64,000 nt of DNA from Zygnema circumcarinatum SAG 698-1b (GCA_037447605.1 CM074808.1:3844001-3908000); one strand, 5' to 3'. Shown: positions 448 to 63,866, numbered from the stretch's first letter. A program made the numbers and translations. The notes: generated by a model from the sequence alone, not told the origin.

Positions 448-3400
448 ATGAGGCCCCGCGCAGACCTTAAGCCGGCCATGGCTGCCACGTGGCGCTACCA
501 TGGCTCGGATTCCATGCGCTTCCTCCTCCTTGTGCTCCTCCTCTTCGTAGCGGAGCAGCCATGGCGGGCCCATGGCTGCCCTCCTCCTCCTCGCTGGACC
601 CTCCTCGCCGCCTTCACCGCAAAGGCGCGCACCGTTTTAAGGAGGGCGGGGGAGCCAAAGGAGAGGGTGTCGCTGCGATCTGGAAAATATTTACACAAGG
701 TGCGCCTTGGTCTATTTTTTTTTATGTATAATTTTAAGATGATGATTCCATTTTTTTAGTTTTTGGTTTTTACGATTTCGAGAGTGAACGATACCTTTAA
801 TGTTAATGAAATGTTGAACAACTTGGGTTCGAATTTGGTTTAAAAATGATGACTTGCTGGAGAGGAAGAGGAAGAATGGCAACTGAGCGAGACCCAATGA
901 TTGAAACGTTTCAATTTTTAATTTTAGATTTAAATTTTGCAGAGGTGGTCTCCCCCTCCCCTTCACGCCTCAAAAAGAAAAAGGAACGGGAATCAGCAAA
1001 AAAAGAGATTTGATGGCTCAAAATAGATCAACACATTCACATCAAGAGAATGTTCAACAACTTAGAGCTATGAAGCATCCTTGGAATCATCGGCAATGGT
1101 TGGCCATACCAATGGTTGGAATCATTGACAATGGTTGGCCATAAGGTGGAGAGAGTGGGAGAGAGAGGAGAGAGCGAGAAAGTACAGACATTAAACAGGA
1201 AGAATATATAACATTTGAGCTTCTTATTCTCTCCCCCTCCCTTTGATTTCGCCCTAAATTCTTCTCGTTGTAGGTTGAGCATTGCAAGAAGGGCGGGCCT
1301 TTGAATTGTTGTAGCGATCGATCCGATGGACTTTATCGAGACCCCTTCACATGGCCTCCCTGCAGGTACAGTATTCCCCCTCGCTAAATTCATCAAGGCA
1401 ACGGTTGGACTGTGTGGAGAGAGAGGGGGAGAGAAGGAAGAGGGAAAGAGAAAGGGAGAGAGAGGGAGAGGGAGAGGGGGAGGGAAAGGGAGAGGGAGAG
1501 GGAGAGAGAGAGAGAGGGGGAGGGAGAGAGAGGGAGAGGGGGAGGAAGAGGGAAAGCGAGAGGGGGAGGAAGAGGGAAAGAGAGAGGGAGAGAGAGTGGG
1601 AGAGGGAGAGGGAGAGAGGGAGAGAGAGGGAGAGCGAGAGGAAGAGGGAGAGAGAGGGAGAGGGAGAGAGAGAGGGAGGGAGAGAGAGTGGGAGAGGGAG
1701 AGGGTGAGAGAAATGGAGAGGGAGAGAGAGGGAGAGGTAGAAGGAGAGGGAGAGGGAGGGGGAGAGAGAGAGGGGGGGAAGGACGAGGGAGAGAGACGGA
1801 GCGGGAGAGGGAGAGAGATGGAGAGGTCGAGGGAGAGGGAGACCTACCTCTTTTAGAAAAACACAAGAGAGATGCACTACAAGAAGACACAGCTAAGTGC
1901 CTAAGACTTAGCGTATCAGATAATGCTCAAGAGGATGTTGAAGGGGACTTGAACTTGCGTTCATGTGTTTGAAGTGAAGTTATTTGTTTTTTGCAGCGCA
2001 TTCTGTAAGTGTTCGGGAGGATGCTTAGTAAATTTCACTGTCTGTAGTGAAGGCCTCCTCTTTAGCACTCTCCGGGGGGGCTGTGACTCGCCCCACCTCT
2101 CCTCCTGCTCCCATCGGGAAGAGGACGCACTGAATAATAGGCATAGCAATAATGCCGAAGAGGAGGGCGGGGGAGAGAGAGTGGGAGGGGTGAGAGAGGA
2201 GGAGGAGGAAGCGGAGGAGGAAGAGGAGGAAGAGGATGAGGAGGAGGAGGAGGAGGAGGAGGAGGAGGAGGAGGAGGAGGGGGACACTTATTTAAGCTTC
2301 AGAGAAGTGGGGTCCGAACATGATGTCAGCATTCTCAAGAAAAAAAAACGTCCCCATAGCATATGGAAACCGTTGGTAAGTGGTAGAACGCATTCCCTGA
2401 ATGCAAGGCGGCATTCTCCTGATGGAGGGAGACACGGAAGGGCAAGACAACTCTCTGAAGACGAAGAAGTAGACTTCGTACGGGGAGGTAAACGTCCCCC
2501 AGGTGAAGGAAATCGTCCCCCAGGTGTAGGGAAACATCCCCCAGGAGAAGGAAAACGTCCCCCAGGTGTAGGAAAACGTCCCCCAGGTGTAGGAAAGCGT
2601 CCCCCAGGTGTAGGAAAGCGTCCCCCGGGTGAAGGAAAACGTCCCTCCGGTGAAGGAAAACGTCCCCCCGGTGAAGGAAAACGTCCCCCAGGTGAAGGAA
2701 AGCGTCCTCCTGGTGAAGGAAAACATCCCCCAGGGAATGGTAACGTACCTCCTTGCGAGGGTAGGAGGCCACCTGAACAAGATGGACGACCTCCCGGTGT
2801 CGGAGAAAACATCTCACCCTGTCTCCAAGAGTCCCCTGAACCCCCTAAACCCTCTGCTCCTCCCCCCCCCCCTCCCCCTTCACTCTCTCCTTCCCTTCAT
2901 TCTCCCCCTCGCTCTCCCCCTCTCCCCCTTTCTCCCACTTCCCCACCACCATTTTGTAGTTTATCATCTTCGGGGGGGCCGTGTCCCTCTCCCTCCCTCC
3001 CTCCGTCATTCTTGAGCCCCCCTCGACCTCCTCCATCTCCGCCGGCATTCTTTCTCTATAATTCATGGAACCCGGCCACCTTGCCAAAGCCGCCACAAGT
3101 GGTTAGTTTCAACTCTTAGCTCGTCTGTTTAAGCGTTGAAGCAGGGATGTGGGAGTGGGAGTTAAATGTGGCTGTGTTGTAAGCAAATTTGTCTTTTTTT
3201 GTGTAATTTAATGGTTGCCGCGGTTTACTTCCAATTCTTTAGGGTATCCATAGGACCTTATATCTGGGCTCTGATGGGAGGTGGGCTTCAGATTAGCGAT
3301 GGCTGCTGCCAAGGGAGGAAGAACGGTATTTTTCAGAACTTTCTGGCCAAGCCGCCTTGCAGGTGATTATTACATAACAAAACGACACCGATTCGAACGT

Positions 3401-6400
3401 TCAATAATTTTAATCTAAGTTTAATCTTGGAACTTAATGTAACAAAAAACTAAAAGACTTACTGAATTTAAGTTCTAATCTCGTCAAGTTTCGGGTTCAT
3501 GTAATGCAGGCAATTTTGTGAATGTGATGAGAACGGAAAGCTTGTGAGTGGCGGTCTGTGTCCGGAGGGGCTCCTTTGGAGTCCGGAGTTGCAGACCTGC
3601 GACAACGCGGACTTTGTTACCTGCTTGAATACAAATTCGAGCCTTCTTCCCCCCAACACCCCATATTATTCCCCTCCGGCGAATCCCCCCCCTCCTCCTC
3701 TGGTAATGGGTTTGAAGCCCAAAAATCTAAAATCATCTCTACCTTTGAACTAGATTCAACTACCACAATGATGATATAAAAATTGACCAAAAATGGTTTA
3801 CTTTTATTTGTATATATATATATATATATATCTTTTTTGTAATTTATTGATAAAGTACGTTTGTACGCTGTCACATGCAGCCCAACAAAGGAGTTTTGAA
3901 TTCAGGCTACGTCGACCGCTACGCTCTCATAGAAGCGTGCACTCCTTCGTGCACTCCGTTAGAGATGGTGAAGTTCAACAGCAGATTCCGGTATCAAACC
4001 GTTCCCAGGAGTGAAATCCGTTCAACTGTAAGCTGGCGAAACTATAGCAACGAGGTTCGATACCAAGGAACTTGCGGTAAGTAAAAATAACAAGCCTTCG
4101 GAAAAGTTTGAGTTTGTTTCGTTTCTTTCTTTTTGGCGCCTACTATTATTTAAAAAAAAAAAAATTGTTCAAAAAGGTTGTTTTTCGCCTCATTGCAGAT
4201 GGATGCTGGGCTTTCAGCGTAGTTGAAGCAGTTGAAATATCGATCAACATAAACGACCACGTGTTGGGGGCCCCTCTTTCCGTACAGCAACTTTTAGACT
4301 GTCTGCCTCAGCATGGAGACAGTTGTGAAGGAGGGGACCCAGTAGACGCTTTGGAGTATGTTGCGAATTTGGGAGGTCTAAATTATGATTTCAATTACCC
4401 TCAGCTTTCAGGAGAAGTTCGAAATGGCACTTGTCAGACGATTCCGGTGAGACCTAAAATTTATAAATTCTAAAAAAAAAACTCAAAAATTAAGAATCCA
4501 GAAAAAGTCGAGCTTTTTCCTCTAATGTATAACGGCTTTGTCTACATTGACAGAGTAAGGTATTCTTTCTGGCTGTTCTATGCGCAGCTGTTATGCAACT
4601 GAACTGAAGGGATATGTTCTATGTGTCTGCAGTTACAGAACGAGAGGAGTCTAGTAGTTGGATGGGAGCAAATTCCGAACAACAATGCAACCGCGCTAAT
4701 GCAAGTGGTCAACAGTCAGCCTGCAATCATTGCAATATGCACATGTGATTCGTTCCTCGAGTACAGACAAGTACGACAAAAACGAGGGAGGAGGGAGAGG
4801 GAGAGAGTTGGGGGAGCGAGTGGCGGAAGGAAGGGAGAGATAAACTTCCTTTCTTTAATTTCCTGTTCGGAAGTTCAGGTCGGCAGTGATTCCCATACTG
4901 CTTTCTCCCAATATTGATAAATTTCCGCATTTTGTAAATTGAACTTCATTGATTTGTTTGACAGGGCATTTTCACAGATCCGGATGGACAATGCAATGGT
5001 CTTCCGGACCACAACCTGGTGGTGATCGGCTACGGAACAGAGAACGGAGTTCCATATTGGCTCGCAAAAAATTCGTGGGGCATAGATTGGGGTGAAGATG
5101 GGTACATGCGCATTTATCGAAATATGACCGGCTCCGGAATCGCCAATATGTACTTAATCGCTCCTGTATATCCAGTCATCAATGCATACCCTACAGGGAA
5201 ACAGAGCGCCCAAAGGAGAGACCTTCTCGGTAAATTCAACGCAAACTTTCCTTGTAAATGCCGATCACAAGTTGCATGGGGTTAGGTTACTAACATAGGT
5301 TTTCACAGCAACATTTTTCACTTCAAGTCTTAGAAACTGAATCTCATTCTCCTTGTTGCGTTCTGAGCTTTGAACTTGGCAAAGTCGAATTGGGTTTTGT
5401 TACCTTATTTGTAAGAGGTGAAGTTATGTGAATTGAAGGATTCCTTTTCCCTTCCCCAGTTCCTTCAGGAAATCCAACGCAATCGCCAACTCCATTTCCA
5501 GCCCGTCTTCCAACACCACTCTCTCCCATCCTCCTCCATACCATCCCTTCCCTACCTCCATTCGCCCATGGCTCCTCTCCCTCCCCTTTCGCGCCTGGCC
5601 CATCTCCCTATCCTTCACCTTTCGCCCCCTCTCCCTCTATTTCCGACTTTGGCCTCTCTCCCTCTCTATTCGCCACCGGATCTTCTCCCACTGCCCCCTC
5701 TACCTCGCCCACTCCCGTCCCTGCTCCCTTTCCTTCGCTCCCCATCCCCTGTCCCTCCCCTTCCTCTCCCTCCCCTTCCTCTCCCTCCCCTTCCTCTCCC
5801 TCCCCTTCCTCTCCCCCACCCTCTCTCTCCTGTCCCTCCCCTTCCTCTCCCTCCCCTTCCTCTCCCTCCCCTTCCTCTCCCTCCCCTTCCTCTCCCCCAC
5901 CCTCTCTCTCCCCTTTCGCCCCTGGCCCCTGTCCCTATCCTCTCCGACCAGGACCTCCTCACTCTGCCCCCTCTATCATTCCGACTCCCGGCCCTGCTCC
6001 CTCTCCTTCGTTCTCCATCGCCTCTCGCTCCCCTTCCTCGCCCACCCCCTCCCCCTCTCCTCTCGCCCCTGGACCTTCTCCCTCTGCCCCCTCCATCTCT
6101 CCCACTCCCGGCCCTCCTCCCTATCCTTCCCTCCCAATCCCCTCGCTCTCTCCTTCCTCTCCCGCCCCCTCTCCCTCTCCTTTTGCCCCAGGCCCCTCTC
6201 CCACTACTCTCGCCACAAAACCGTCTCCCTCGGCCTCCTCTACCTCTCCCACTTCCGGCCCTGTCGCCTTTCCTTCGTTCCCCATCCCCTCTCCCTCTCC
6301 TTCCGCCCCTGCCTCATCTCCCACACTTTTCGCCCCTGGACCTTCTCCCTCTGCCAACTCAACCTCTCCTACTCCCGTCCCTGCACCCTTTCCTTTGTTC

Positions 6401-9400
6401 CCTATACCCCCTCCCTCTCCTTTCGCCCCTGGCCCCACTCCCACTGCTCTCGCTCCTGAACCCTCTCCGTCTGCCCCGTCTATCTCTCCCTCTCCCGGCC
6501 CTACTCCCTTTCCTTCGTTCCCCATCCCATCGCCCTCTCCTTCCTCTCCCGCCCCCTCTCCCACTCCTCTCGCCCCTGGACCTCCTCCCTCTGCCCCCTC
6601 TACCTCTCCCACTCCCGGCCCTACTCCCTTTCCTTCATTCCCCATCCCCTCTTCCTCGCCTTCCTCTCCCACTCCCTCTCCCACTCCTCTCGCCCCTGGA
6701 CCTTCTCCCTCTGCCCCCTCTACCTCTCCCACTCCCGGCCCTACTCCCTTTCCTTCATTCCCCATCCCCTCTCCCTCTCCTTCCTCTCCCGCCCCCTCTC
6801 CCACTCCTCTCGCCCCTGGACCTCCTCTCGCCCCTGGACCTTCTCCCTCTGCCCCCTCTACCTCTCCCACTCCCGGCCCTACTCCCTTTCCTTCATTCCC
6901 CATCCCCTCTCCCTCTCCTTCCTCTCTCGCCCCCTCTCCCTCTCCTTCCTCTCCCGCTCCCTCTCCCACTCCTCTCGCCCCTGGACCTTCTCCCTCTGCC
7001 CCCTCTACCTCTCCCACTCCCGGCCCTACTCCCTTTCCTTCATTCCCCATCCCCTCTCCCTCTCCTTCCTCTCCCGCCCCGCCCTCTCTCCCACTCCTTT
7101 CGCTCCTGGACCTTCTCCCTTTGCTCCCTCTACCTCTCCCTCTCCCGGCCCTACTCCCTTTCCTTCATTCCCCATCCCCTTCCTCTCCTTCCCGCCCCCT
7201 CTCCCTCTCCTCTCGCCCCTGGACCTTCTCCCTCTGCCCCCTCTCCCTCTCCCACTCCCGGCCCTACTCCCTTTCCTTCCTTCCCAATCCCCTCTCCCTC
7301 TCCTTCCTCTCCCGCCCCCTCTCCCACTCCTCTCGCCCCTGGACCTTCTCCCTTTGCTCCCTCTACCTCTCCCTCTCCCGGCCCTACCCCCTTTCCTTCC
7401 TTCCCCATGCCCTCTCCCTCTCCTTCATCTCCCACCCCCTCTCCCTCTCCTTTCGCCCCTGGCTCGTCTCCCTCTCCTCTCGCCCCTGGACCTTCTCCCT
7501 CTGCCCCCTCTCCCTCTCCCACTCCCGGCCCTACTCCCTTTCCTTCCTTCCCAATCCCCTCTCCCTCTCCTTCCTCTCCCGCCCCCTCTCCCACTCCTCT
7601 CGCCCCTGGACCTTCTCCCTCTGCCCCCTCTCCCTCTCCCACTCCCGGCCCTACTCCCTTTCCTTCCTTCCCCATCCCCTCTCCCTCTCCTTCCTCTCCC
7701 GCCCCCTCTCCCACTCCTTTCGCTCCTGGACCTTCTCCCTTTGCTCCCTCTCCCTCTCCCTCTCCCGGCCCTACTCCCTTTCCTTCCTTCCCCATCCCCT
7801 CTCCTTCTCCTTCCTCTCCCGCCCCCTCTCCCACTCCTCTCGCCCCTGGACCTTCTCCCTCTGCCCCCTCTCCCTCTCCCACTCCCGGCCCTACTCCCTT
7901 TCCTTCCTTCCCAATCCCCTCTCCCTTTCCTTCCTTCCCAATCCCCTCTCCCTCTCCTTCCTCTTCCGCCCCCTCTCCCTCTCCCTCTCCCTTCCTCTCC
8001 CCCCTCTCCCTCTCCTTCCTCTCCCGCCCCCTCTCCCACTCCTCTCGCTCCTGGACCTTCTCCCTCTGCCCCCTCTCCCTCTCCCACTCCCGGCCCTACT
8101 CCCTTTCCTTCCTTCCCCATCCCCTCTCCTTCTCCTTCCTCTCCCGCCCCCTCTCCCACTCCTCTCGCTCCTGGACCTTCTCCCTCTGCCCCCTCTCCCT
8201 CTCCCACTCCCGGCCCTACTCCCTTTCCTTCCTTCCCAATCCCCTCTCCCTCTCCTTCCTCTCCCGCCCCCTCTCCCACTCCTCTCGCCCCTGGACCTTC
8301 TCCCTCTGCCCCCTCTCCCTCTCCCACTCCCGGCCCTACTCCCTTTCCTTCCTTCCCAATCCCCTCTCCCTCTCCTTCCTCTCCCGCCCCCTCTCCCACT
8401 CCTTTCGCTCCTGGACCTTCTCCCTTTGCTCCCTCTACCTCTCCCTCTCCCGGCCCTACTCCCTTTCCTTCCTTCCCCATCCCCTCTCCCTCTCCTTCCT
8501 TTCCCGCCCCCTCGCCCACTCCTCTCGCCCCTGGACCTTCTCCCTCTGCCCCCTCTCCCTCTCCCACTCCCGGCCCTACTCCCTTTCCTTCCTTCCCCAT
8601 CCCCTCTCCCTCTCCTTCCTCTCCCGCCCCCTCTCCCACTCCTTTCGCTCCTGGACCTTCTCCCTTTGCTCCCTCTACCTCTCCCTCTCCCGGCCCTACT
8701 CCCTTTCCTTCATTCCCCATCCCCTCTCCCTCTCCTTCCTCTCCCGCCCCCTCTCCCACTCCTCTCGCCCCTGGACCTTCTCCCTCTGCCCCCTCTCCCC
8801 CTCCCACTCCCGGCCCTACTCCCTTTCCTTCCCCCCCCCGCCCCTCTCCCTCTCCTTCCTCTCCCGCCCCCTCGCCCACTCCTCTCGCCCCTGGACCTTC
8901 TCCCTCTGCCCCCTCTCCCTCTCCCACTCCCGGCCCTACTCCCTTTCCTTCCTTCCCAATCCCCTCTCCCTCTCCTTCCTCTCCCGCCCCCTCTCCCACT
9001 CCTCTCGCCCCTGGACCTTCTCCCTCTGCCCCCACTACCTCTCCCACTCCCGGCCCTGCGCCCTTTCCTTCCTTCCCAATCCCCTCTCCCTCTCCTTCCT
9101 CTTCCGCCCCCTCTCCCTCTCCTTTCGCTCCAAGCCCTTCGCCCACTCTCCCCTCTTTCCCTCTCACTCCCGGCCTTGCTCCATTTCCCTCCTCGCCCAT
9201 TCTTTCTCCCCCTCTTTCCCCAGGGCTTCCAGTTCCCAATCGCCCCCCCTCCCTCCATCCCTCGCCTCCATTTTTCTTTCCTCCTGTATCCTCTCCTCCT
9301 CCACTCCTTCTTATTCCCCCACCTCCAAAGAGTCCTCCCACTCCTCCGGGTAAGCCACTTCCTTCGTTCTTTCTTCCTTCTTTCTTGCTTTAACCATTTA

Positions 9401-12400
9401 CCATCCATTTTTCTTTTGTCCTTTTAATTTGTTTGCCATATGTATTTTTTTTCAAATTTGTTAAAGACGTTCTATGTTGAATCTTGCAGCCACTGCTTGT
9501 GACGGCGGAATTCGCTTCAATGCATGTGGGGGTGGTGCCTGTATCCCCTACCCGAGTGATATTACCAAATACACGTGTCAGTGTCCTACTGGCTACACAA
9601 GTGTTCAAAATCAGGACGGAAATGAAGTGTGCACTCAAAGTAAGCTCATCCCTCCCTCTGTCATTCCTTTCCTTATTTTCAAAAGTACAAAACAAAATGA
9701 CCATCACATAACATCATAATTACATTAAAACCTATCAGAATGATTGCTTTTAGAAAACCCAGAAAACCCAGAAACTCAGAAAATCTAATTTTTTGAAATG
9801 TTGTATGTTTTTTTTACAGTTGATGTTTGCTCGGGATTGACATACAACCCTTGTGGAGTTGGCCTGTAAGGCCCTTTATCCCCTTCTTCTGAAAATTCTG
9901 AAAGAAGACGTGTAATTAGGGTGTTTGCTGTTCCGTTGGGTTTGGGGTTCAGGATTTTTGACGGTAGTTAGGGTTTCCAGGTCTTCAGAGAAGTCGATTG
10001 TCTCATGGTGTACGAGTATTCACTGTGAATTGACCGTGTTTGTTGAAAAGGAAATCTTTCTCTCTCTTTCTCTTCCTGCTGTCTCACTCTTTCCCTCTCG
10101 TCTTCCCTTCCCCCCCCACTTCCCGTCTCCCCTCTCCCCCACTCCCCTCCCCCCCTCTCCCCTATCCTCTCCCCCCCTCTCCCCTCTCCTCTCTCTCTCT
10201 CTACCTCTCTCTCTCCCCTCTCTCTCTTTCTCCCTCTCTCTCTCTTCCCTCTCTCTCTCTCCTTCTCCCCCTCTCATTTCTCTCCTTCTGTCCTCTCTCA
10301 CTTTCTCTCCCTCTCTCTCTCTCCCCCCCTCTCTCTCTGCAGATGCGCGAATGACGGAAAAGGGAACTATGAATGCGACTGCAGCGCCTTCAGTGGCTTC
10401 TCTGAAGGAACTCGAACGGACGGCTCGAAGACTTGCGTTCCAAGTAATCGCAACCGTCTAATCATAGCATATAATCTTTTTGCATCATTGCATTTTCCTT
10501 TTATCCACTCAAAAATATAAAGAAAGAAGAGAAGAAACCGCTGAAGATTTTGAAAAAAAAAAGTGACAAATACAGAGTTTATTTATTTATTTATTTTTCC
10601 TTTTGTCTCATGTTTATGTTTGGGCTGCAGCTGCGGCAACCTCCCTCTCCGCAGAAAACAACACTTACACCGTGCCGGACGGAAGCCTTACCTGCTCAGA
10701 AATCGCTAAAATCAACTTCTTGGATTTTGATGATCTCCTCTCCTTGAATCCAGTAAGGTGGACCTAGTCTGCAAAAAGGATCCACCTCGGATCAACCCCT
10801 TCCACTACTTACAGAAATTTTCATCCTTCATTGTCTTCTGGATTGCTCATTTTTGGTGCACAACAAGAGGGTGGTTAGGGTTATACTTCACGTGATTAAG
10901 CTCTGATTTCTCGATTTCTTTACTTATGAGTTGCTTTTCTTTTCTTTTTCTTTCTCAGTATCTCAGTCTATACTGCGGACTAGACAGACCAGAGGCAGAA
11001 GTTCCGGAAGGTACGGAGCTGGCAGTGGGTCCGGTTGTAAGGGACATTGCCTGCGGAGTAATATATAGCACAATTAAGGTACGAAATAACATTGACATAC
11101 AGTAGTAGATTTTTCTCTCTCTCTCTCTCTCTCACTCGCTTTCCCTCTCTCTTTGTAAGAAAAGTAAGTGCCATCTGTAAACTCGATGCAATTGCAATAA
11201 TGCAATGTTTCAGCAGAAATGCTTCAAGTTAATAGGGTATGTCCGACTTATAAATCATAAGTAGTGCTGAAGAGAAAACTTCCGTAGATCTGATACGAAA
11301 ACGAATACTCCGGTGACATAGCGATCCGAAAGGAGTCCTCCGTATAAAAATCTCCAGTACTACTGAAGGAAAAACTTCCGCTTGGTTTTTGTTCAAGTCT
11401 GACATGCCCTAATATATTGTTAACGTTTTAATTGTGATTGCAGGGAGATACATGTAACAGTATAGTGAATCTGTTCAGCAGTCCTCCCAAAGCTCTCTCT
11501 TTGGATAAATTGGTCGCCGTCAATCCTCCCTCTACCCTAAACTGCCAAAATCCCGACGCCGATTTAGGGCCTAATTTGCCGGTGCGGTTGAACATTCCAT
11601 ATTTCAGCCCCTTGAAATTAAACGTTTGTGATTTAAAGTTCAGGGTTTGATGGATGAGAGGTGTCCGTTGAATGTTTGTCGTTCATGATTGAGCCATGGA
11701 ATGAATCTTGAAATTTTAGGGCTATGAGGGTGTTCAGGCTTCTCTCCCTTCCTCTTCTCTTACTCCCTCCACCATCCTTCTCCCCACCTTCTCCCCCTCT
11801 CCCTCCCTCCCCCTTCTCTCCCCTCTCTCCCTTTCCCTCCCCTCTCATTCACCCCTTCTCTCTCCTCCCCTCCCCTCCTCTCTCATTCCCCCCTTCTCTC
11901 TCCTCCCCTCCCCTCCCCCCCTCCATTCCCCTCTCTCTCCCTCCCTCTTCTCTCCCCCCTCCACTTCTCTTTCCCCCCCTCCCCTTTTCCTCCCCCCTCC
12001 CTCTCCCCCCCTCTCCCTCCCTCACTCTCTCTCTCTCTCTCTCTCCCTCTCCCTCTCTCACTCTGTCTCTCTCTGTCTCTCCCTGTGGCGGTCCCCGTGC
12101 AGGTGTGCGTGGAGCCGAGCCCGTACTACAAGAGCCAGCTGTGCGGGCAGTACTACGAGGTGCTCCCAGCGGACCGCGGCCGCGGCTGCGCCTTTCTGTA
12201 CGCGGGCCGCACCACGGCGCTCGAGTTCTTCGCGCTCAACCCCGGGATCAACTGCGACGCGCTCGTGCAGGGGGACCTGGTCGGCCGCCGCTCAACCCTA
12301 AACCCCAAACTCCTGCAACCTATCTTGATCTTAACTATTGAAAAATCTACAAATCTTGAAACCCTGCAGCACGAAAAGGAGGAGACTTGCTCTGTTCTGC

Positions 12401-12963
12401 CATGTAACGCCGTAAACAGAATGAAATCTATGCCTATCTATCTGCATCTTACGTCTTCCAAATTCGGAAAATTTCGAAACCTGGTCCCTAATTCAACCCT
12501 TACCCTCCTTCAACCCTTACCCTAATCCAACCCTGAACCCTAATCCAACCCTAAACCCTCCTTCAACCCTAACCCTAATCCAACCCTAACCCTAATCCAA
12601 CCCGAACCCTAATCCAACCCTAACCCAACCATCCTTTCCTTTCCTCCCTCACAGATCTGCACCTTGCCCTACAGCCCCCAAATATTCGGCGCCAACGGCT
12701 GCTCCCGCAACGCCTGCACGGACCCTAAGTATACGAAAAACCCTAAAAAAGCCACCCCCATCACCATCCGCGGCCCTGGCCAGAGCTGCCTGAAGGCCGC
12801 GTACTCCCCCGCCTTCCGCTGCAACCTCAACATCTTCACCTGCCTCAACCAGGGCCAGGTCTGCAACGCGCGGACGGAGCTGCTGGGCCGCGCGGTCTGC
12901 GCGCCCACGCAGAAGTACGTTCCCAAGGATAAAAAATTCGCCAACCAATGCAAGAAGAGGTAG
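448..12963 (+). CDS. Secreted multidomain protein A: SP - CBM14-like - acidic/PPGxGK repeats - CBM14-like - papain C1A protease - Pro/Ser stalk - EGF x2 - LysM x3-4 (multi-exon)
   Basis: Phase-compatible GT-AG exons: 448-699, 1274-1365, 1997-~3101, 3292-3362, 3510-3702, 3881-4076, 4199-4446, ~4639-4770, 4965-~5253, 5469-9349, 9490-9639, 9820-9865, 10343-10443, 10631-10752, 10959-11078, 11444-11581, 12103-12279, 12655-12963. Motifs: hydrophobic [13 protein letters not shown]; [36 protein letters not shown]; [33 protein letters not shown]; 6-Cys EGF units; YTV..LTCSEIA..LLSLNP. The first intron and the extreme 3-prime end are less certain, and the stalk exon carries a net frameshift in this assembly. 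Confidence 0.8.
2198..2282 (+). repeat. GAG microsatellite encoding a poly-Glu tract in gene A
   Basis: (gag)n run in frame within the 1997-3101 exon: [18 protein letters not shown]... Confidence 0.85.
2493..2805 (+). repeat. 21-bp coding tandem repeat, about 15 copies of the heptad (R/H)PPG(E/V)GK
   Basis: Unit cgtcccccaggtg(a/t)aggaaaa read directly; translation [28 protein letters not shown]... Confidence 0.9.
3881..5253 (+). other. Papain-like (C1A) catalytic domain of gene A, 4 exons
   Basis: SWR..RYQGTC|DGCWAFS (oxyanion Gln, catalytic Cys), [25 protein letters not shown] (His), [14 protein letters not shown] (Asn). Confidence 0.93.
5469..9349 (+). repeat. ~120-bp (40-aa) Pro/Ser/Thr/Ala tandem array, roughly 20+ copies plus degenerate flanks; extensin/AGP-like stalk exon of gene A
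   Basis: Unit [40 protein letters not shown]. Bounded by acceptor ccttcag| (5468) and donor g|gtaagc (9349). The register switches between reading frames near 7080, 7180 and 7990. Confidence 0.85.
12490..12630. repeat. Degenerate telomere-like repeat (CCCTAA/TCCAA mix) in the last intron of gene A
   Basis: Repeated ccctaatccaaccctaa / aaccct units. Confidence 0.7.
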
Positions 12964-25472: not shown

Positions 25473-25507
<35 letters not shown>

Positions 25508-45801: not shown

Positions 45802-45855
<54 letters not shown>

Positions 45856-48408: not shown

Positions 48409-48442
<34 letters not shown>

Positions 48443-49451
48443 GTGGAAGTCATCTTATGTTGGGATTCAGAGGCGTTCCTGATGTGGGTTTTCTTGGGGG
48501 GGTCGGAATTTAGGGCTCTGACTGTTGGCACAGCCTTGCTTATGCCTTGTTTGTGTGATGCTTTTTAGTTTGTATGGTCCCTTTTCTTTGGTCCTTTGCG
48601 TGCATGTGATAGTTACGTACGTATTTTATCTGATGGTCCCATGTCCAATTTGCATTTGAATTGTGCAGCTACTCCTTGTAACGGAGGGATTCCCGACAAC
48701 ACATGTGGTGCGGGCACATGTGTGCCCACATCCGGTAACACGTCGTATATCTGCTCATGCCCGAGCGGCTATGTGGATGTTCCCAATACAGTCACAGGGG
48801 AACATGTATGCGCACTTGGTAAGCTCTCTCAAATCCAACATGAAATCCCCTATTCCGTTGCAGTTACAGTTCACGGCAACCGTAGCAATTGAAAGGGGTA
48901 GTCGGAGCTTTAGTCAGCTGTCCTTAGTGGATTTTTGGCTTGTGAGATTTGAGGTTATTGATTTTTGCCGTTGTTGTTTTTTGGGCTCATGCTGCAGTGG
49001 ACGTTTGCTTTTCGACTACTTACAACCCGTGCGGAGTTGGGAAGTAGGATCACTCTCCTTCTCCCTCTGTTCTCTGATGTTTGTATCAAAGGAAATGTTG
49101 CCTCCTTTCCTCCCTCCCCTCCTCCCTCCTTTTCCATGTCCTTCCTTTCTTTCCTTTAACTCTCTCCAGCTACTCCCCATTCTCAATCTCTTTCTTCACT
49201 TTCGCTCCAATCCCTCTCTCCCTATCCAGCTTTCCCCCCGTCTTTCCCCTCCCTCTCTAGCTTCCCCACCATCTTCCTCTCCCTCGCCAGCTTTCCCGCC
49301 ATCCCCCTAACCCTCTCCCTCCCCAGTTTTCCCCCATCTCAAGCTTTCCCCCCATCTCTCTCTCCCTCTTTTCCACTAGCTCCCCCATCTCCCTCCTCCT
49401 CCCTATCTTTCCTCCGCTTCCATCTCTCTCCCACTTCCCCCCTCCATCTCG

Positions 49452-49499
<48 letters not shown>

Positions 49500-49510
49500 T
49501 TCTCTCTTTC

Positions 49511-49569
<59 letters not shown>

Positions 49570-51159: not shown

Positions 51160-52427
51160 GTGAGGATGAATTTGGTAGCAAGTTATAGGGGGGCGGGGAG
51201 AATAAGAAAGAGAGAAAAGGCAAAGCATTTGTTTACAGTGGTGCTCAGAACTATTTATTTCTGCCTCCTCCCTCTCCCTCTCCCTCTCCCCCTCCCNNNN
51301 NNNNNNGGGGGGGGGGGGGGGGGGGGGGGAGAGTGTCTAAGGTTGCATTGTTTCCACACTCAGGAAAGGATGTGGCTAAATAAGTTGAGGTGGGTTCTCT
51401 TGATGTTGGTATTTGGGGTATAGATCCTGAACCCTTGTGGCCTTGGGGCCTGAGAGGAGGGATAAGGGGGATGGGGGGAGGTAAGAGTGGGAGTGGGAGA
51501 GTTGGGTCTTTACGAAAGGTTGTGGGTTTGTTTAGTAAGTGAGGAGACGGAGAGAGAGGGAGACGAGAGGGAGACGAGAGGTGGGAGATTCAGCAGCAGG
51601 CAGTGTTCTAAGGAGCGGAGGTCGCTGTAGAGGTGTGTGAGAGAGAGAGAGGGAGAGAGGGAGAGTGAGAAAGGGTGTGCCTGATTATTTTTTTTCTCTT
51701 ATTTATACATTGTAGGGTGAATGACGCCAAATAAGGTTTCATGAAAAAATTCTAGTTTCAGATTTGCCTAGTTTGTATTTGGGCCCCGCCCTCCTTCCCT
51801 CCCGCCAGAAGTCAGCCAGTCAGGGCAGGAAATAAGGCAGAATTTCAGCAAAAATTGATGCTTAATCTGCTAGGTGGGGCAGGTTCTCTATTAGGCGCTG
51901 AGATTCTTTTCCACGATGACGTAATTTTCAACTTATTTTCCTACGCATTCTGTGTCCCCTTCCTGTTTCTATCGCTTTTTTTTTCCGCAGCATGTGCGTC
52001 TCTGATGTGCTGTTAAGGGATGAGGGTCTGCTGAAGTTATAGCGGCTGTCTTTTTTCCTCTCCCTCTTTTTCTTTTTTTTGTCTTACTTTAGGCGTCATT
52101 TTAGCATTCAAACACTCCACGCTGTGGAATAAGCAAAAAGGAAAAGAAGTGGTAAACATCTTAAGGAATTCACATTGCACGTGAAAGGGGATGTGACACC
52201 TACAATTGACCCACCCACAGATGATGTTTTCAGCGAGGAACTGTACACACAACGTAGAAACTAACCCTCCATAACATTCCAAACAAATATAAACAAAAAA
52301 TAAAAAGAAAGGGATAGTCCTAAACACGCCCTAGTCCTTCTAACAAAATTTGGGAAACATAACAGAAATTCCACAATTAAGTGTGCTGTCCCTTTTGAGC
52401 GAAGTCAAGTCTGCAGCTTCAAAGGGT

Positions 52428-55064
<2,637 letters not shown>

Positions 55065-55789: not shown

Positions 55790-55868
<79 letters not shown>

Positions 55869-55913: not shown

Positions 55914-58900
55914 TCAATGCACCACCTTCTCCACCTTCTCCTCTCCCACCTCCCCCATGTGATCGCTCGTGAACAAGTCCAAATTCTCCAACAAGTGCAC
56001 CACTTGAGCCATGGTCGGCCGGTCGGTCGGCTTCCTCGATGTGCACATGAGCCCAATCTTGAGCGCCCCCAAAAGTTGACCCTTCTCGTGTTCCGCCAAC
56101 TTCAGGTTCGGATCCACCGCATCCATCGCCGCTCTCTTGATCCACAACAGACTGACCCAAGCGGCCAATCCGGACTCGCCAATTGTCTTGTCTGTTGGGC
56201 GCCTACCTGTGAGCACTTGGAGGATCACAACTCCAAAAGCGTAAACATCACTTTTGGGAGTTAACCTCTTTTTGAGAACATACTCCGGAGCAAGGTAACC
56301 GACCGTTCCTGAAACCGCTGTTGACATGTGGGTTTTGGTGTCAATGTCGAGCTCCTTAGCAAGCCCAAAATCTGCAATTCTGGGCTCCATTTCACTCTCA
56401 AGCAGAATGTTGGCGGGTTTAATGTCGCGATGAATGACGGCTGGTTGACAGTCGTGATGAAGATATTTGAATCCGCGGGCAGCTCCAACAAGCACATAGT
56501 GCCGCATTTGCCAGTCCGAAAAAACTTTCTTCTGCCCGGTGAGGTAGCTGTCGAGGTCTCCTCCAGAAACAAACTCATAGATGAGAAGGGCCTCTTTTCT
56601 GCTGATATAGCTGCCAATCAGAGTCACCAGATTCCGGTGCCGCAGCTGCCCCAAAGTTTTTGTCTCTGCCCGAAGCTCCTTCAGGCCCTGCCCGCTGCCC
56701 GCTGCCAAACGTTTGATCGCCACTTCCAATTGGCCGTCTCCTATGGTCGCTCTGTGGAACAGAACGGAACAGAAACAGGACATGGAGCAACACTCCCAGT
56801 TAGCTTCCGAAAAGAAAAAGTTGAAGTGGAGCCCCAAAAAGGTCCTGAAGTCCTTTCAAATAAATAAATAAATTACCCAATGACAAATGAATTTTAGAAC
56901 ACTGAATCAGAGTGGGAGTTATCCTGTCTGAAGCCGCCCTCATATAGAAGCCCAAAATTCATACAAACTTGACCTCTGCACCTATTAAGCATGAAGCCCC
57001 TTCACTGCCTCATGCAACACAGATCAAAACCTTGCAAGCTCACAGAACTTTGAAACAGTTTAAACTATGAAAAAGATTCACTGTTGTACTGTGAACGTAC
57101 CGGTAAACCGAGCCGAACCCACCGACTCCCAACAGATTTGCATCGCTGAAGTTACCCGTTGCTTCCAAAATCGTTCGATAAGTCAAGGGGAATCCAATCT
57201 TGTGATATAAAACGAGCTCTCCCCCGTCCGGCCCATACTTCCGTATATGCCGGATCACGAAAAATGCAATGGCCAATAGGAAAATTCCACAGACCGCGCT
57301 TCCAATAGCGATTCCCACAATTGCAGCTGTTGACAGATTATGTGACGTGGGGCAGGAGGACAAGGGAAACCCACAAAGGGCAGAATTGTTCACATATGAG
57401 CTGCTCAAAAAATCCGTTAAATTTCCACCGGGCAGATGCCCAGACAAAAGATTGCTTGAAACGTTCAAAAATTCCAAATTTCTGAGACCAGCGAGTTCTG
57501 GGGGAAGAGTGCCGTTGAACTCGTTGTTGGAAATATCAAGGACCAAAAGGTTTGTCAGGTTGCCCAACTCGGCGGGCAGCTGCCCTGAAAGAGAATTTTC
57601 CTCGAGTTGAAGGTACTGCAAGCTCGTCAAATTGCCGATGGAGTTGGGGAGTGAGCCGGAGAGAGAGTTTGAGCTCAGATCAAGTGCTCTTAAATTTTGC
57701 AGCTGCCCGAGAAGAGGGGGGATGCCACCTGTCAGACTGTTCCTGGAGAGGTTTAAAGTGAACAAAGCAGAGTCGGATGAGAAGTTTGTCGGAAGACTTC
57801 CCCCAAAAAAGTTGTTTTCCAAGGACACCACCTTCAAACTTTTCATCTGCCCCAGCGTTTCGGGCAGCGTGCCATTCAACGAATTCTCGCCGAGATAGAC
57901 GTTATTGAGATAAGAAAGAGCACTGCTTCCTGCAGAGATTGGACCCGTTAACTGATTTGTCCTTAAATCTAAAGTTCGAAGGCTCGAACTGTTCAAGAGG
58001 GAAGGCGGAATTACTCCACTGAGCTTGTTATTGCTTATTCGAAGGTACGCGAGTTTCGTATAGTTTCCGAACTCCGTCGGAATCTCTCCTTCTAAGAAAT
58101 TATTGGAAAGGTCAACATTGACAATACTTTTACGGGGAAGGAAATTGGAGGGAATTTGGCCTGAGAGAGAGTTCCCTGAAGCGTTGAAGGTGGTAAAGCC
58201 CGGCGACTTCTGTCCAAATGCGGGAATACTTCCGTTGAACTGATTGTTCTGCAGCTCAACATCCTCCAGATATCCCAACTTAAGCATGCTTGGAATGGGC
58301 CCACTAAACTGATTATCAGAAATGAACACGCTCTTTAAGCTAATCGATCCGTTGAATATTCTCGGTCGTAACTGTCCAGAAAGCTGATTTGAAGCGAGGT
58401 TCAATTCCAAAGGGGCCCCAGCACTTGAGCAACAATCTGCCAAACTTGCAGGGATGTTTCCTGTCAAATCATTGAAACTGAGGTCCAGAACTGAAAGAGA
58501 ATTGAGCCCTGCGAAATCCACATTTATGGTTCCATTCAACGAATTAGAAGAAAGAGATAACAGCTCCAAGTAAGGGTAGTCAGAGAACTTCGGAACGGGT
58601 CCCTCCAACTTGTTGCCCGAAAGGTCGAGCGATGTCAGATTTCCCATAGAAGTTCCATACTGCGCCGGGATGATACCTGAGAACATGTTGTTGCTCAGAA
58701 CAACATTCGTCAAGAGCGACGGATTCACAAATTCAGGAAGGCTTCCAGTGAACTGGTTATAGGATAAATCGACGGATACGAGGGAGTTTAAGGTGCTAAA
58801 CACTGTCGAAATTGGGCCCGTCAGATTGGTATTGCCAAGCCAGAAAAGCTGAAGATTCACAAGCTTCGAAAACTCCGCTGGAACTGAACCCGACAATGTG

Positions 58901-59856
58901 TTCTCACTCAGAACTAGATTGGTCAGTCCAGTGCATTTGCTAAGCTCTGCGGGAATCGGTCCTTCAAAATTTGAAGAAAAGAGGGCCAAAGCGGAGAGTT
59001 TTGTGAGGTTGCCCAACTCGGTGGGCATCATAATGTTCCCGAAATCGGTATATGAGAGAGCGAGGACCGAAAGGTTGCTTAGTTTAGTGACTGAAAAGAG
59101 GAAATCTGCGGACCCCTGCAGCCTGTTTCCTGAGAGCCTCAAATCCTCCAAATGCGAGAGACTTGCAATAGATAGGGGAAGAACGCCTGTGAGATTGTTG
59201 TATCCCAAATTCAGCGTCGTCAACTTTGTCAGGTTCGCGACAGTCTCCGGAATGAACCCATTTAAGAGGTTACCTTCCAGATTCAAGCTTTCCAGGCTCG
59301 ACAAATTCCCAATATATTCCGGGATGCTGCCATTGAAAGAGTTTCCTGAAAGGTCGAGCGTTTTGAGCTGGTCTAGCAATAGCAACTCTACAGAAATAGG
59401 GCCTTCAAGACCGAAATCTGTAAGCTCCAGCATAGTCACTCTCCCTTTCGTGCAAGTCACCCCTGACCAAAGACATAAGTCCGAGACTGTAGAAGCAGTC
59501 CAATCCAAATACTCATCAGGATCCACCAAACTCTCCTTAAACTTTAACAGAGCGTTGGCATCTGCAACAGCTGCTGTAGTAGCAAGAATCCTCCTTATTC
59601 CTTCTTCTCCTGCAGAGTCGCTGGTCTCTCTCCCTCTCCCTCTCCCTCTCCCTCTCTCACTCCCTCCTCCTCCTAACTCCCTCTCCATCTTCTGGACCTC
59701 CCAACGCGCCCTCCCGCGCTCTCCCCCTTTCCTGCAACGACCTCCTCTCTCCCCTCCTCCGCCATGGCTGACTCTCCTCCCATCCGCCTGAGTGAGACCA
59801 GAAACGCAAATAATAGCAAGCAATGCTACAACAACCAGGACTGTCCTGCCTGACAT
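55914..59856 (-). CDS. LRR receptor-like kinase 2, ~1197 aa, about 28 LRRs in one exon, RD kinase with RPK2/TOAD2-like signature
   Basis: Exon 59856-57101 (signal MSGRTVLVVVALLAIICVSG, LRRNT W..SDLCLWSGVTC, LRRs, NNSALCG cap, TM AAIVGIAIGSAVCGIFLLAIAFFVI) spliced in phase 2 to 56751-55914 (AIKRL, HRDIKPAN, DFG, GTVGYLAPEY). Confidence 0.93.
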
Positions 59857-60336
59857 TATACGTCTGTTCTAGAGAGATATGGAACGAACGAGACAGAGAG
59901 AGAGAGAAAGAGAGAGAGAGAGAGGGGAGGGAGAAAAAGAAGGGCGGTGAAGCGGCAACCAACCCTAAGCTCGAAGGCGCACCACAACTACTCCAGAAAT
60001 CTCTAGAATGAAACAGAAGCCTTCAACCAACGCCTCTATATTCCGATATACTGTGCAGAAATTTTCCAAAAGCACCGTGTATTACCAACCAGAACTGCTC
60101 CTGCACTTTCACTTCCTCCCAAATGTCGCCTGCTTTGCTACATCCACCAAAACAGGCCTTACCGTAAACTCATGCACGAATGCAATAAACTGCACTCTTC
60201 ACCTTTCCTAAACCTCAATCAAATAACGCAAATAATTTTCCTGCAGGCCGACCCCCATGGCCTGCTCCTCTCCCTCCCTCCCCTTCTCGCCAACCTCCCC
60301 CCAGTCAAACCCTACTTGGACCTGCCTTCCTGCAGG

Positions 60337-60612
60337 CGTCACGTGACAGGCCGTGACGTAACATGGCGCCAAAGGAAGTACGGTACCGTCGAGGACCGTG
60401 TCATGTAATATGGCGTGACGTTTCGTGACGTGACGCCGCCGGCGTTGACGGCGGAGATCTCGAAACTGTGCCGGCCGGCAGAATTTTGGCGCCGCCGCCG
60501 GCGCCGCAGTCGGTGGATGTACAGACCAATCAGAGGGACCCCGAGAGTGGCGGGGGGGTGGACACGTGGAAAAGCGATGAGCTGGTGTGTACGAATTGCT
60601 CGGTGGCACGTG
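60337..60612. promoter_or_regulatory. Candidate bidirectional promoter core between LRR-RLK-2 and PUB-2
   Basis: Six TGACG half-sites (one on the reverse strand) in 60337-60450, CACGTG at 60340, 60563 and 60607, and CCAAT near 60526. Confidence 0.45.
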
Positions 60613-61016
60613 GTATCCCGTGGATCTCGGACGGTGGACGCCGAGGCGACAGGGCTTTTGGCGCGCAGCTAATCAATGGGGAAAGGGGGCGGCTCCCAGT
60701 TGATCCATGTGATCAACTGATCTTGAGTTGAACCGTGTGGTTATCGCGGAAGAGGAGGAGGATCCACTCTGCCGGTCGGCCGTTGCGGAGCCGGCGAGGC
60801 TGGCTGGTCGCGACGGGCAGACAAAAAAACGTTTTTTCGTTCTGACTGAAACAATGTAAAATGTTTTCCTTTCTCAAAATTAGGTGCTTTCGGGTTGGGA
60901 TGGAAAAAAAAAGTTAGAAAATAATTGCAACTTCGATCTTTATCCGGTTGGAAAGACGCCTATAAAGTTCCAAACCCTAAGAATGGCTTCGAGGGGATGG
61001 GGCTGGCGCGTGCAAG

Positions 61017-61178
61017 CATGGCATGGGGGGGCATGGCGGCATGCATGCATGCATGCACATGCCCTGCCATGGCGGCATGCGAATGCCAGTGATTGGCCAT
61101 GGCCATGGCCATGCGCAAGCGTGCCATGGCATGCATGAGGACCGCATGAGCTTGAAAGTCGAATGCCATGTCGCCATG
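61017..61178. repeat. CATG/RY-rich low-complexity tract upstream of the PUB-2 ATG
   Basis: 19 CATG counted, including catgcatgcatgcatgca. Confidence 0.7.
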
Positions 61179-61311
61179 GCTTGAAGCTTGCTTGCAGGAA
61201 TGCGGTACTTTATGTGGCGAGGTGACGATTAAGGTTTGGAGAGTATCTTTCTGGTTGTAATATCGTCTGGTTCAGGTCAGTTTTTAATTAATTTGTTTAT
61301 TCCTTGAAACC

Positions 61312-63866
61312 ATGTTGAAGAAGCTGAAGTTTCCGAAGTGGAATGGGAAGGAGAAGCGAGGAGGAGCACAGGGGGTCGACATCAATGTGTCGCAGAGGAG
61401 GCTGCTCGACAGCCAGACCGGCGTCGGATACTCTATGGGGACTTCAAACTATTCGGATCTCATTACCAATGCAAACCCCTCCTCTTCCAGCATCAATCCC
61501 ATCAGCTGCAGCACTGACCTCCAGCACCCCTCACCCTTCCAGGATAGAGAAGACGACGAAGAAGCAGGAGGAGGAGCGAGAGGAGGGGAGGGAGGAGGAA
61601 GGGAGGAAGGAGGGGAAGGGGAAGGGGTATTGGAGGGAGAAGGTAGAGATGAGGAAGGAGGAGGAGAAGGAGTAGTAGAGAATCCAACAAAGCCCCCTAG
61701 TCCAGCTGGCGCCCTTTATACTGAAATACGGCTCATAGAGCATGCGAGAGAGTGGGAGGCAACGGGAGCGAAAAGTGTACCTCCTGACTTTATATGTCCT
61801 CTCTCTCTGGATATTATGGTAGACCCTGTGGTAATAGCCTCCGGGCAGACATATGAGCGCGCATACATTGAGAGATGGCTTGCAGGAGGCCACAAAACTT
61901 GCCCTAAAACAAACCAAGAGCTTCCCCATACGAATGTGGTCCCAAATGAAGCTGCCAAAGCGGTAATAAGGGAGTGGTGTGCCACACACGGTGTCGTGCT
62001 TCCCGAAACGGTGGATGTGAGAGAGGAAGCGGTAGCAAGAGCGGTAGCGGCGAGGAGGAGTGAGAGAGATGAATTGGGAGAGCATATGCAAGGAGGGGGG
62101 TATGGTGGGGGCCTGCTGGCAAGGAGGAACCAGTACAGGGGACTCAGAGTGGAGGGCTTTAGGAGGCAAATGGAAAGACAGGCGGTGGTCCTTTTTGGGG
62201 GTTCAGTGGAATCTTCTGCTACTTCATCTCCAATCACTCCCGCTGTAGTAGTTGCGGCGGTGTTGGAAAGTGGGGGAGAATTGGGGCGGCAGAGCAGTTC
62301 AGATGGGAGAGCGGTATCAGAGAGAGGAGAGGGAGAGGCAGCAGGAGGGAGAGACGAGGGAGATATGGAGGAGAATTTGACCACCACAACAACGGAGTTG
62401 TTAGCTAATAGGACAACGGATTTGATGACATCCACAACAGATTTGAGTGAATGTAACTTCACTGGAATGTCACTCTGCAGTGACAATTTACCCCTTACGA
62501 CAACGTCTATGTCTATTCAGGGAGTTGCAATTGATGAAGGGGAGGAATCCAGTCGGAGGAAGAGAAGATCAAATAGAAATAAAGAAGAACCTGTGAACCA
62601 TCAGGAAATTAGGAATCTTTTGCATGGTGCTCAATCAGAGTCAGAGCCAGTGAGGAGACGCTCTACTGAGGGACTACGTCGAATTTCTAAAATCTCTCGC
62701 ATTTCACGTATTGTTTTAGCCGAAATGGGAGCGATTCCAATCTTAGTGGACCTGCTGGATTCAGTAGATGAAGAGACCGCAGAGTATGCAGTAACTTCCT
62801 TAGTGAATTTATCCCTTGAAACTGAATTGAGGCGGCAGATTGCTGGAGGGGGAGCGGTTATTCCGCTTGTTCGGCTCCTTGAATCGGCAGAGTCGCTCGT
62901 ATTGAGAGAGAACGCGCTAAGTACTTTGTGCAACCTCAGTTCAGTCGAGCCCTTCCGAGAAGAGCTTAGTTCCGCCGGTTTAATACCACTCCTTCTCGAT
63001 ATTTTGGGAGCGGACGAGACCTTTTCAGTCCGGCAAGAAGCATCCATGGCTCTCTTCAATCTTGCCCTAAATGCCGAATGTCGTGCAGCTGTCGTTTCTG
63101 CAGGAGGAGTTGAACTTGTTTTGGAGCTTATGGGAGAGGACGATGGTGAACTGGAGGAGGATTTGGTGATGCTTTTATGTGCTTTGTTGAGGTCTCCTTT
63201 AGGGCGAAGTAAGGTTCAGCTTTTGGAAGGAGTTCCTGTGTTGGCTTCTATAGCAGAGGGAGGCTCTGAGGGGGCTCAGACTCACGCAGTAGCAGCTCTC
63301 CTATTGGTGGCTTCTGGAAGTGAGATGGGGCGGGAGATGGTGCGGAACGAGATCACTATTCCATCCCTTGTTGCCATTTCAGAAGGAGGGACTGCAAGGG
63401 GGAAATCCAAGGTGTGAGCGCGGCCTCTCTCTCTCTCTCGCTCTCCCTCTCTCTCCCTCTCTCTCCCTCTCTCTCTCCCTCTCTCTCCCTCTCTCTCTCT
63501 TTCTCCCTCTCTCTCCCTCTCCCTCTCCCTTTCTCTCTCCCTCTCTCGTTCTCTCGTTGGCTTCTATTTTAAACTAGGTCTGCTAGGTTGCTAGGAGTAG
63601 TCCCTATTGACTTTTCGCGTGTGTTTCCTGTTTACTCTTTCTTTCTTCACACTTATAGGCTGTTGGTTTTCCCAGTTTTAGAGTTTCATCATTTTTATTT
63701 TATGAGTGTTTCGGGTTGTTAGGGCTCGTATATTTTTGGCTTTTACCGGTTTCAGGGGCTTGTCTAACGCTGTTCTCCTTGACCTGTTCCATTGCCGGCT
63801 GCGCCTTCTTCCTCTCTCCCTCCATTGCAGGCATTGGCGCTCCTTCAATTGATGCGGCGAAAGTAG
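61312..63866 (+). CDS. U-box/ARM-repeat E3 ubiquitin ligase (PUB-2), ~711 aa
   Basis: Exons 61312-63411 and 63831-63866 (ALALLQLMRRK*). U-box PPDFICPLSLDIMVDPVVIASGQTYERAYIERWLAGGHKTCPKT..VVPN followed by ARM repeats. Confidence 0.93.

Follow-up and report, generated by a model that had tools for sequence, protein, structure and literature searches.

A protease, U-box/ARM ligase and receptor-kinase neighbourhood found twice within 64 kb of Zygnema circumcarinatum: a possible relic of an old local duplication

The question raised by a 64,000-nucleotide stretch of the genome of Zygnema circumcarinatum SAG 698-1b (GCA_037447605.1 CM074808.1:3844001-3908000; the window in the following, with positions counted from its first nucleotide) is why one gene neighbourhood recurs in it. 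As described by an initial annotation, each copy consists of the gene for a chitin-binding protease, the gene for one metabolic ligase and a head-to-head pair formed by a leucine-rich repeat (LRR) receptor-like kinase (RLK) gene and the gene for a ubiquitin ligase with U-box and armadillo repeats (PUB-ARM). Based on the analysis reported here, the repeated pattern is quite possibly what remains of an ancient local duplication, the duplicated block having held at least the genes for a CBM14-papain protease and for a U-box/ARM ligase, as two of the four positions (protease and PUB) are occupied by paralogues. Genes were recovered by Pfam scans of open reading frames (ORFs) and by tblastn with retrieved homologues across the window, whereby the order and the strands proposed for the eight genes, i.e., A(+), GSH1(+), PUB-1(-)<>RLK-1(+), B(+), panC(-), RLK-2(-)<>PUB-2(+), were recovered as well:

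1965-12282, plus strand: gene A, a secreted-type mosaic protease (Pfam CBM_14, Peptidase_C1, EGF), initially delimited to 448-12963
14063-18728, plus strand: GSH1, a plant-type glutamate-cysteine ligase (Pfam GCS2 and splice junctions)
20008-22332, minus strand: PUB-1 (Pfam U-box 4.9e-17, Arm 3.2e-9)
26201-39382, plus strand: RLK-1, an intron-rich LRR receptor kinase gene of 13 kb with at least 24 exons (LRR motif scan, tblastn with RLK kinases)
44122-51162, plus strand: gene B, the paralogue of A (Pfam CBM_14 and Peptidase_C1), initially delimited to 42313-51159
52431-55064, minus strand: panC, a pantoate-beta-alanine ligase (pantothenate synthetase; Pfam Pantoate_ligase 8.8e-25, tblastn with panC homologues)
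55914-59856, minus strand: RLK-2, an LRR receptor kinase gene of two exons (Pfam LRR_1/LRR_8/LRRNT_2, Pkinase 4.2e-43)
61312-63866, plus strand: PUB-2 (Pfam U-box 2.7e-21, Arm 2.2e-20, ARM_PUB)

All eight are ordinary genes from the nuclear genome of a streptophyte alga, each a new member of a known family (PUB-ARM ligases in which no UND domain is detectable, LRR-RLKs, plant-type glutamate-cysteine ligase, pantothenate synthetase and CBM14-papain-LysM proteases). A ninth gene was not seen, and the larger ORFs of the intergenic stretches and of the opposite strands gave no Pfam domain match.

The first of the two paralogous positions is that of the proteases. Both A and B encode papain-like (C1A) proteases with chitin-binding modules, as judged from the Peptidase_C1 match, the Cys/His/Asn triad and the CBM14 exons, the catalytic motifs being GCWAF/ACWAF, DHN/THN and NSWG. 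Their parts are:

1965-2108 and 3505-3624, plus strand: CBM14 exons of A
3854-5264, plus strand: papain C1 exons of A, Cys/His/Asn retained
~5469-9349, plus strand: Pro/Ser stalk of A, 3.9 kb of 120-bp tandem repeats, with EGF and LysM-type exons after it as far as 12282
44122-44262, plus strand: CBM14 exon of B
45570-47160, plus strand: papain exons of B, Cys/His/Asn retained
48656-51162, plus strand: EGF/LysM-type exons of B

The paralogy that had been assumed for A and B was borne out by 13 collinear exon matches of 36-55% amino-acid identity and by the same set of domains, whereby the papain exons of the two genes are 42-45% identical. In both genes an intron lies just 5' of the catalytic-cysteine motif (with a slash marking the intron, QGTCG/..GCWAF in A, 3854-4470, and QQAC/..ACWAF in B, 45570-46303), and this common position upstream of the catalytic Cys fits the paralogy. 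The stalk of A holds ~19-30 copies of its repeat with 82-86% identity and is stop-free in three plus frames and one minus frame, which is why four long overlapping ORFs are listed there; nothing comparable stands between the papain and EGF exons of B, unless it is hidden by the assembly gap at 48399.

The second paralogous position is that of the ligases. U-box (Pfam PF04564) and C-terminal armadillo repeats (Pfam Arm, ARM_ARMC5, ARM_PUB) were found in PUB-1 as well as in PUB-2, the best relatives of which are plant PUB proteins; both products are putative E3 ubiquitin ligases and putative binders of kinase domains. No PF25368 or MLKL_N match, indicative of the N-terminal UND / PUB10_N domain, was obtained with Pfam for either of them at E<=0.01, while this domain is present in the Closterium protein P0015 and in land-plant matches. 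The two genes share their exon structure:

22332-20656, minus strand: exon 1 of PUB-1
20655-20044, minus strand: CT-rich GT..AG intron of PUB-1, which contains the gap at 20299
20043-20008, minus strand: last exon of PUB-1, ALALLTLLREG*
61312-63411, plus strand: exon 1 of PUB-2
63412-63830, plus strand: CT-rich GT..AG intron of PUB-2
63831-63866, plus strand: last exon of PUB-2, ALALLQLMRRK*

A PUB-1 product of 767 residues was ruled out, as the low-complexity tail of the respective ORF is a read-through of the CT-repeat intron. Relatives of the ligases were collected by a profile search of 1.84 billion representatives and placed in trees, in which PUB-1, PUB-2 and three algal-type transcript proteins form one clade with a support of 100/100, separate from the PUB4-like group (with Chara P0296), the PUB10-13-like group (with Closterium P0015) and the PUB6/45 group. 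The nearest relatives (P0251, P0255 and P0289) are EukProt Trinity transcripts and hence carry no genomic context; P0251 and P0255 possess the same C-terminal motifs as PUB-1 and PUB-2. Overall, PUB-1 and PUB-2 are 36% identical, with 60% identity in the best U-box match, and their sisterhood was not rejected by the approximately unbiased (AU) test (p=0.24). Both genes are split right after the K of the motif GT.RG..K/A.ALL (the slash marking the intron) and continue with a last exon of 12 codons, whereas this site is uninterrupted in the Closterium PUB, which belongs to another class; the clade is hence backed by an independent character, in that the two genes share the derived intron as well as the short last exon. 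Together with the clade itself this confirms the paralogy of the ligases, as claimed before. An exact look-up of the PUB-2 ORF gave no record, the query being the unspliced ORF and the true product a spliced one, and neither for PUB-2 nor for RLK-2 did the protein collection searched hold exact or near-identical products.

The position of the receptor kinases is of a different kind. Their parts were assigned as follows:

26201-26395, plus strand: exon 1 of RLK-1, with start codon at 26201, signal peptide and LRRNT
~27150-34343, plus strand: LRR exons of RLK-1, at least 17 LRRs, mostly one 72-nt exon each, the exons with a single LRR at 27813-34343
near 36040-36125, plus strand: hydrophobic segment, transmembrane candidate of RLK-1
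36703-36873, 37417-37557, 37948-38076, 38238-38387, 38631-38744 and ~38975-39160, plus strand: the six kinase exons of RLK-1, an RD kinase
59856 to ~57097, minus strand: exon 1 of RLK-2, with signal peptide, ~24 LRRs, transmembrane segment and GxGxxG
~56815 to 55914, minus strand: exon 2 of RLK-2, remainder of the RD kinase

RLK-2 is an LRR receptor-like kinase of the RLK/Pelle type in all its parts (LRR, transmembrane segment, Pkinase, HRDIK, DFG), and RLK-1 was recognized as such piecewise, from signal peptide and LRRNT, the LRR exons, the transmembrane candidate, HRDIK and DFG. Pfam gave a weak Pkinase match on one exon of RLK-1, the predicted splicing of which was read from the genomic sequence. 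The RD motif (HRDIK) is common to both kinases, which are otherwise 40% identical and have no intron position in common. In the tree, whose land-plant members are only those drawn by the RLK-2 search (named ones being EMS1, MIK, Xa21, FLS2 and At3g47570-like), RLK-2 falls into a 100/100 clade with P0121, P0226 and P0201 (51-87% kinase identity), and RLK-1 stands outside of it. These nearest relatives of RLK-2, together with P0187, are 4-5 kb Logan RNA contigs and carry no genomic context. Exclusive sisterhood of RLK-1 and RLK-2 was rejected (AU p=0.0007), and the exon numbers (at least 24 versus two) agree with the initial annotation in that the two differ strongly in gene structure; RLK-1 and RLK-2 are different lines of the large LRR-RLK family and not each other's duplicates. 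Among PDB entries the best match of the RLK-2 kinase is the BRI1 kinase; one of the kinase exons of RLK-1, compared with PDB, did not discriminate among subfamilies. As a side observation, P0121 (L003, Logan SRR8128907 contig) is close to RLK-2 in its kinase (87% amino-acid and 76% nucleotide identity) but distant in its LRR ectodomain (46%), meaning that the ectodomain evolves far faster or was exchanged.

The remaining position does not repeat at all. The notion of one metabolic ligase as a repeated element had to be abandoned, as GSH1 and panC resemble each other only in the names of their enzymes and belong to unrelated families, GCS2 (PF04107) and Pantoate_ligase (PF02569); they are unrelated housekeeping genes which stand in between by happenstance. 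Consequently, duplication of the whole four-gene block does not describe the locus, since only the proteases and the PUBs qualify. Self-blastn revealed no DNA similarity between the two halves beyond low-complexity and telomere-like repeats, hence any duplication has to be old, and this, together with the RLKs not being sisters, excludes a single recent and simple segmental duplication, which had been doubted from the beginning. The history that we infer from gene content, paralogies and RLK relationships would be that a block with at least protease and PUB was duplicated locally long ago, in a compartment rich in genes for fast-evolving surface proteins, and that inversion and gene turnover followed, whereby a single inversion would convert [PUB(-), RLK(+)] into [RLK(-), PUB(+)]. 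Old segmental or tandem duplication blocks of RLK and secreted-protein families are comparable in that paralogues recur in order (A/B, PUB-1/PUB-2), with deep divergence and rearrangement; they differ in that only two of four positions are demonstrably paralogous here.

Whether an RLK gene was part of the ancestral block is the point at which a second history has to be considered. According to it, protease, PUB and an ancestral RLK were duplicated together once, very long ago, so that RLK-1 and RLK-2 would be very old paralogues, one of which was remodelled by intron loss or gain and by ectodomain turnover. A placement of RLK-1 as the sister of the entire RLK-2 clade was indeed not rejected (AU p=0.47), divergence is similarly deep at all three positions (PUB, papain exons and kinase, with the identities given above), the orientations of the pairs differ by a single inversion and RLK ectodomains change fast, as seen with P0121. 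This history is nevertheless unlikely, as the kinase domains have no intron position in common, the exon counts differ as described, RLK-2 has far closer relatives than RLK-1, and the path in the tree from RLK-1 to RLK-2 is longer than that from the land-plant EMS1-like (LRR-X) kinases to RLK-2. By tblastn, no relic of an RLK-2-like gene was detected beside PUB-1, nor of an RLK-1-like gene beside PUB-2. An ancestral RLK within the duplicated block is hence allowed by the AU test but disfavoured by the gene structures.

Several points weigh against an old duplication of protease and PUB genes alone. The branches in the clade of PUB-1 and PUB-2 are long, and long-branch joins were flagged by the tree tool; A and B are no more than candidates for closest paralogues in what is a large family; the AU result for RLK-1 makes an ancestral RLK in the block possible; and if the RLKs are independent, their adjacency to a PUB would be unexpected to occur twice (0.9% of the shuffles described in the following), which leads to an RLK-rich compartment or to selection.

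Coincidence was weighed by a shuffle test in which order and orientation of these eight genes were randomised, a post hoc test assuming independent placement, an assumption which a block duplication breaks. Regardless of orientation, each PUB came to lie beside an RLK of its own in 14% of the trials, both PUBs were divergent beside distinct RLKs in 0.9%, and the whole pattern occurred in 0.02%. As an illustration with assumed numbers (40 PUB-ARM and 200 LRR-RLK genes among 30,000 genes in all), ~0.5 adjacent and ~0.13 divergent PUB/RLK pairs would be expected, so that two divergent pairs within 40 kb are unexpected under independence. In related algae 75 to ~435 RLKs were reported (PMC10868138). 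A history without block duplication, in which proteases, PUBs and RLKs each were duplicated or moved separately within a dynamic compartment with many gene families, and from which the pattern was picked out post hoc, could call upon these RLK numbers, which run from tens to hundreds, and upon the 14% of shuffles in which mere adjacency arose; however, the rarity of two divergent pairs and of the full pattern, and the fact that two paralogous pairs stand in the same order, render it decidedly improbable. The arrangement is unlikely by simple chance, which is a poor fit, and needs a historical or functional cause.

A functional cause would imply that the divergent pairs are such for a reason, i.e., that each ligase acts on the adjoining kinase and is regulated jointly with it, and that adjacency was selected for or maintained twice, whereby the proteases might supply ligands, as in the surveillance system suggested by the initial annotation. 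The regions in question are:

22333-26200: PUB-1/RLK-1 divergent region, 3868 bp between the start codons, GA-repeat-rich, ORFs without Pfam match
59857-61311: RLK-2/PUB-2 divergent region, 1455 bp between the start codons, ORFs without Pfam match

In either pair the two genes stand head-to-head, and nothing recognisable as a gene separates them. Shuffling seldom yields such an arrangement, which is seen twice even though neither RLK is a duplicate of the other, and both proteases retain their catalytic residues. Moreover, RLKs of Arabidopsis and rice are bound and ubiquitinated by PUB-ARM ligases, which they phosphorylate (PMC8948693). Against this idea, the divergent regions are devoid of a common motif: 10- to 13-mers shared by them are no commoner than in shuffles, and blastn revealed no similarity between them. 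At 3.9 kb the PUB-1/RLK-1 region is well above a typical bidirectional promoter, and housekeeping genes separate the proteases from the PUB<>RLK pairs. As a rule, the classic pattern-recognition receptors of land plants have non-RD kinases, and RLK-1 and RLK-2 with their RD motif are unlike these. Finally, the pattern was defined after being seen, among very many windows. Selection for functional pairs is therefore regarded as doubtful, and protease, RLK and PUB acting as one clustered surveillance system finds no support here. That these particular neighbours are partners can only be inferred; that a ligase of this type acts on a receptor kinase is plausible by analogy, in which case the ARM domain would bind the kinase domain, the kinase would phosphorylate the ligase and the ligase would ubiquitinate the receptor.

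A more specific version assumes that PUB-1<>RLK-1 and PUB-2<>RLK-2 are dedicated receptor/ligase cassettes, for which an alga-specific clade of short U-box/ARM proteins was recruited repeatedly beside different LRR kinases, divergently transcribed and tuning receptor turnover. This is rather improbable; if true, such cassettes would have anticipated, hard-wired in the genome, the immune PUB-RLK regulation of land plants, possibly with the neighbouring chitin-binding proteases involved. Conservation of the neighbourhood was approached with panC as single-copy anchor, which gave only distant matches (42-64% identity over part of the query) and no close annotated genome. In Closterium NIES-67/68 the gene of P0015, a PUB of another class, is flanked by genes for a helicase, a BRCT protein and a COBRA protein, and no RLK gene lies within 10 kb of it, which says little. 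Searches of the literature gave no description of a conserved genomic neighbourhood of PUB and RLK genes.

Comparison with known systems places these pairs as follows. The involvement of PUB12/13 with FLS2 and LYK5, to which the initial annotation had referred, is correctly cited, as a review describes Arabidopsis PUB12/PUB13 with FLS2/BAK1, LYK5 and CERK1, PUB4 with CERK1 and rice SPL11 with SDS2, whereby the ligase is phosphorylated by the kinase and itself attaches ubiquitin to the receptor (PMC8948693). The same two families are found in the window, i.e., U-box and ARM E3 ligases and RLK/Pelle receptor kinases; unlike PUB12/13 and PUB4, the Zygnema ligases belong to a clade separate from the PUB10-13-like and PUB4-like proteins, have no detected PUB N-terminal domain and are putative regulators of receptor kinases only. 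To our knowledge, the genes of PUB12/13, PUB4, SPL11 and their receptor partners have not been reported as genomic neighbours. Head-to-head immune receptor pairs such as RRS1/RPS4 or the TN2/SOC3 cluster are likewise divergent, and there the products work together; these are NLR/TNL pairs, conserved and genetically proven, whereas here ligase and receptor kinase are paired by adjacency. A head-to-head TNL arrangement was also linked to the PUB ligase SAUL1 (PMC8948693). Kinase/U-box fusion proteins (the plant PUB class with N-terminal kinase) also link an RLK/Pelle-type kinase to a U-box ligase and hence provide fusion-type evidence of co-operation, but they are single polypeptides with cytoplasmic kinases, as opposed to separate genes with receptor kinases. 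Should the adjacency prove functional and conserved, receptor kinases and their ubiquitin ligases would for the first time be seen organised as gene pairs, and the PUB-RLK regulatory partnership would date from before land plants, to their nearest algal relatives. What is gained as it stands are well-annotated gene models, including a distinct alga-type PUB clade with its characteristic two-exon structure, and a testable though modest lead on PUB/RLK pairing.

Any history of the locus depends on the window being contiguous. Eight gaps interrupt it, each of exactly 10 N and all within homopolymer or microsatellite tracts (poly-G, poly-C, CT/GA), a placement which suggests local read drop-out:

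14459 and 17543: in introns 1 and 4 of GSH1, the flanking exons being consecutive in the protein
20299: in the last intron of PUB-1, the 12-codon last exon lying beyond it in correct orientation
26426: in intron 1 of RLK-1
34193: between LRR exons of RLK-1, may conceal an exon
38892: between kinase exons 5 and 6 of RLK-1, nothing missing
48399: in gene B between its papain and EGF parts, exon groups on both sides collinear with A
51297-51306: in the convergent intergenic region of B and panC, left flank CT-rich and right flank poly-G, not bridged by any gene

Contiguity, for which confirmation had been sought, was thus backed by gene continuity at seven of the eight joins but not at 51297, the sole gap with different sequence types on its two sides, on which alone the linkage of the left block (A to B) to the right block (panC, RLK-2, PUB-2) depends. 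B exons were searched past this gap and none were found. A wrong scaffold join at 51297-51306, with the halves not being chromosomal neighbours, would be in line with the intergenic position of the gap, its dissimilar flanks and the missing bridging gene; yet the seven other gaps of the same kind are all correctly bridged by genes, the tracts in which all gaps lie point to local drop-outs, and each PUB<>RLK pair is independent of this join and would stand even so. Such an error is considered extremely improbable, and an old local duplication with subsequent rearrangement is retained as the preferred history.

Both housekeeping genes were resolved to their exons:

14063-14337, 15302-15368, ~15645-15725, 16842-17129, 17620-18015 and 18318-18725, plus strand: the six exons of GSH1
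55064-54786, 54049-53711, 53345 to ~53238, ~53090 to 52947 and 52559-52431, minus strand: the five exons of panC

In GSH1, positions 36-132, 131-245 and 242-280 of the GCS2 profile follow on successive exons without loss. The window as a whole has a G+C content of 51% and abundant CT/GA microsatellites and interstitial telomere-like arrays. Further elements recorded are:

39917-40868: foldback or MITE-like (miniature inverted-repeat transposable element) element between RLK-1 and B, with 221-bp inverted arms of 88.8% identity and an internal palindrome (self-blastn)
27889-28523, 54309-54787, 24595-24673, 12486-12626 and 36373-36636: telomere-like arrays

The ORFs of the foldback element hold no Pfam domain. 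Two kinds of unit make up the telomere-like arrays, (AAACCCT)n within an intron of RLK-1 and (CCCTAA)n within the first intron of panC, and shorter mixed arrays occur elsewhere.

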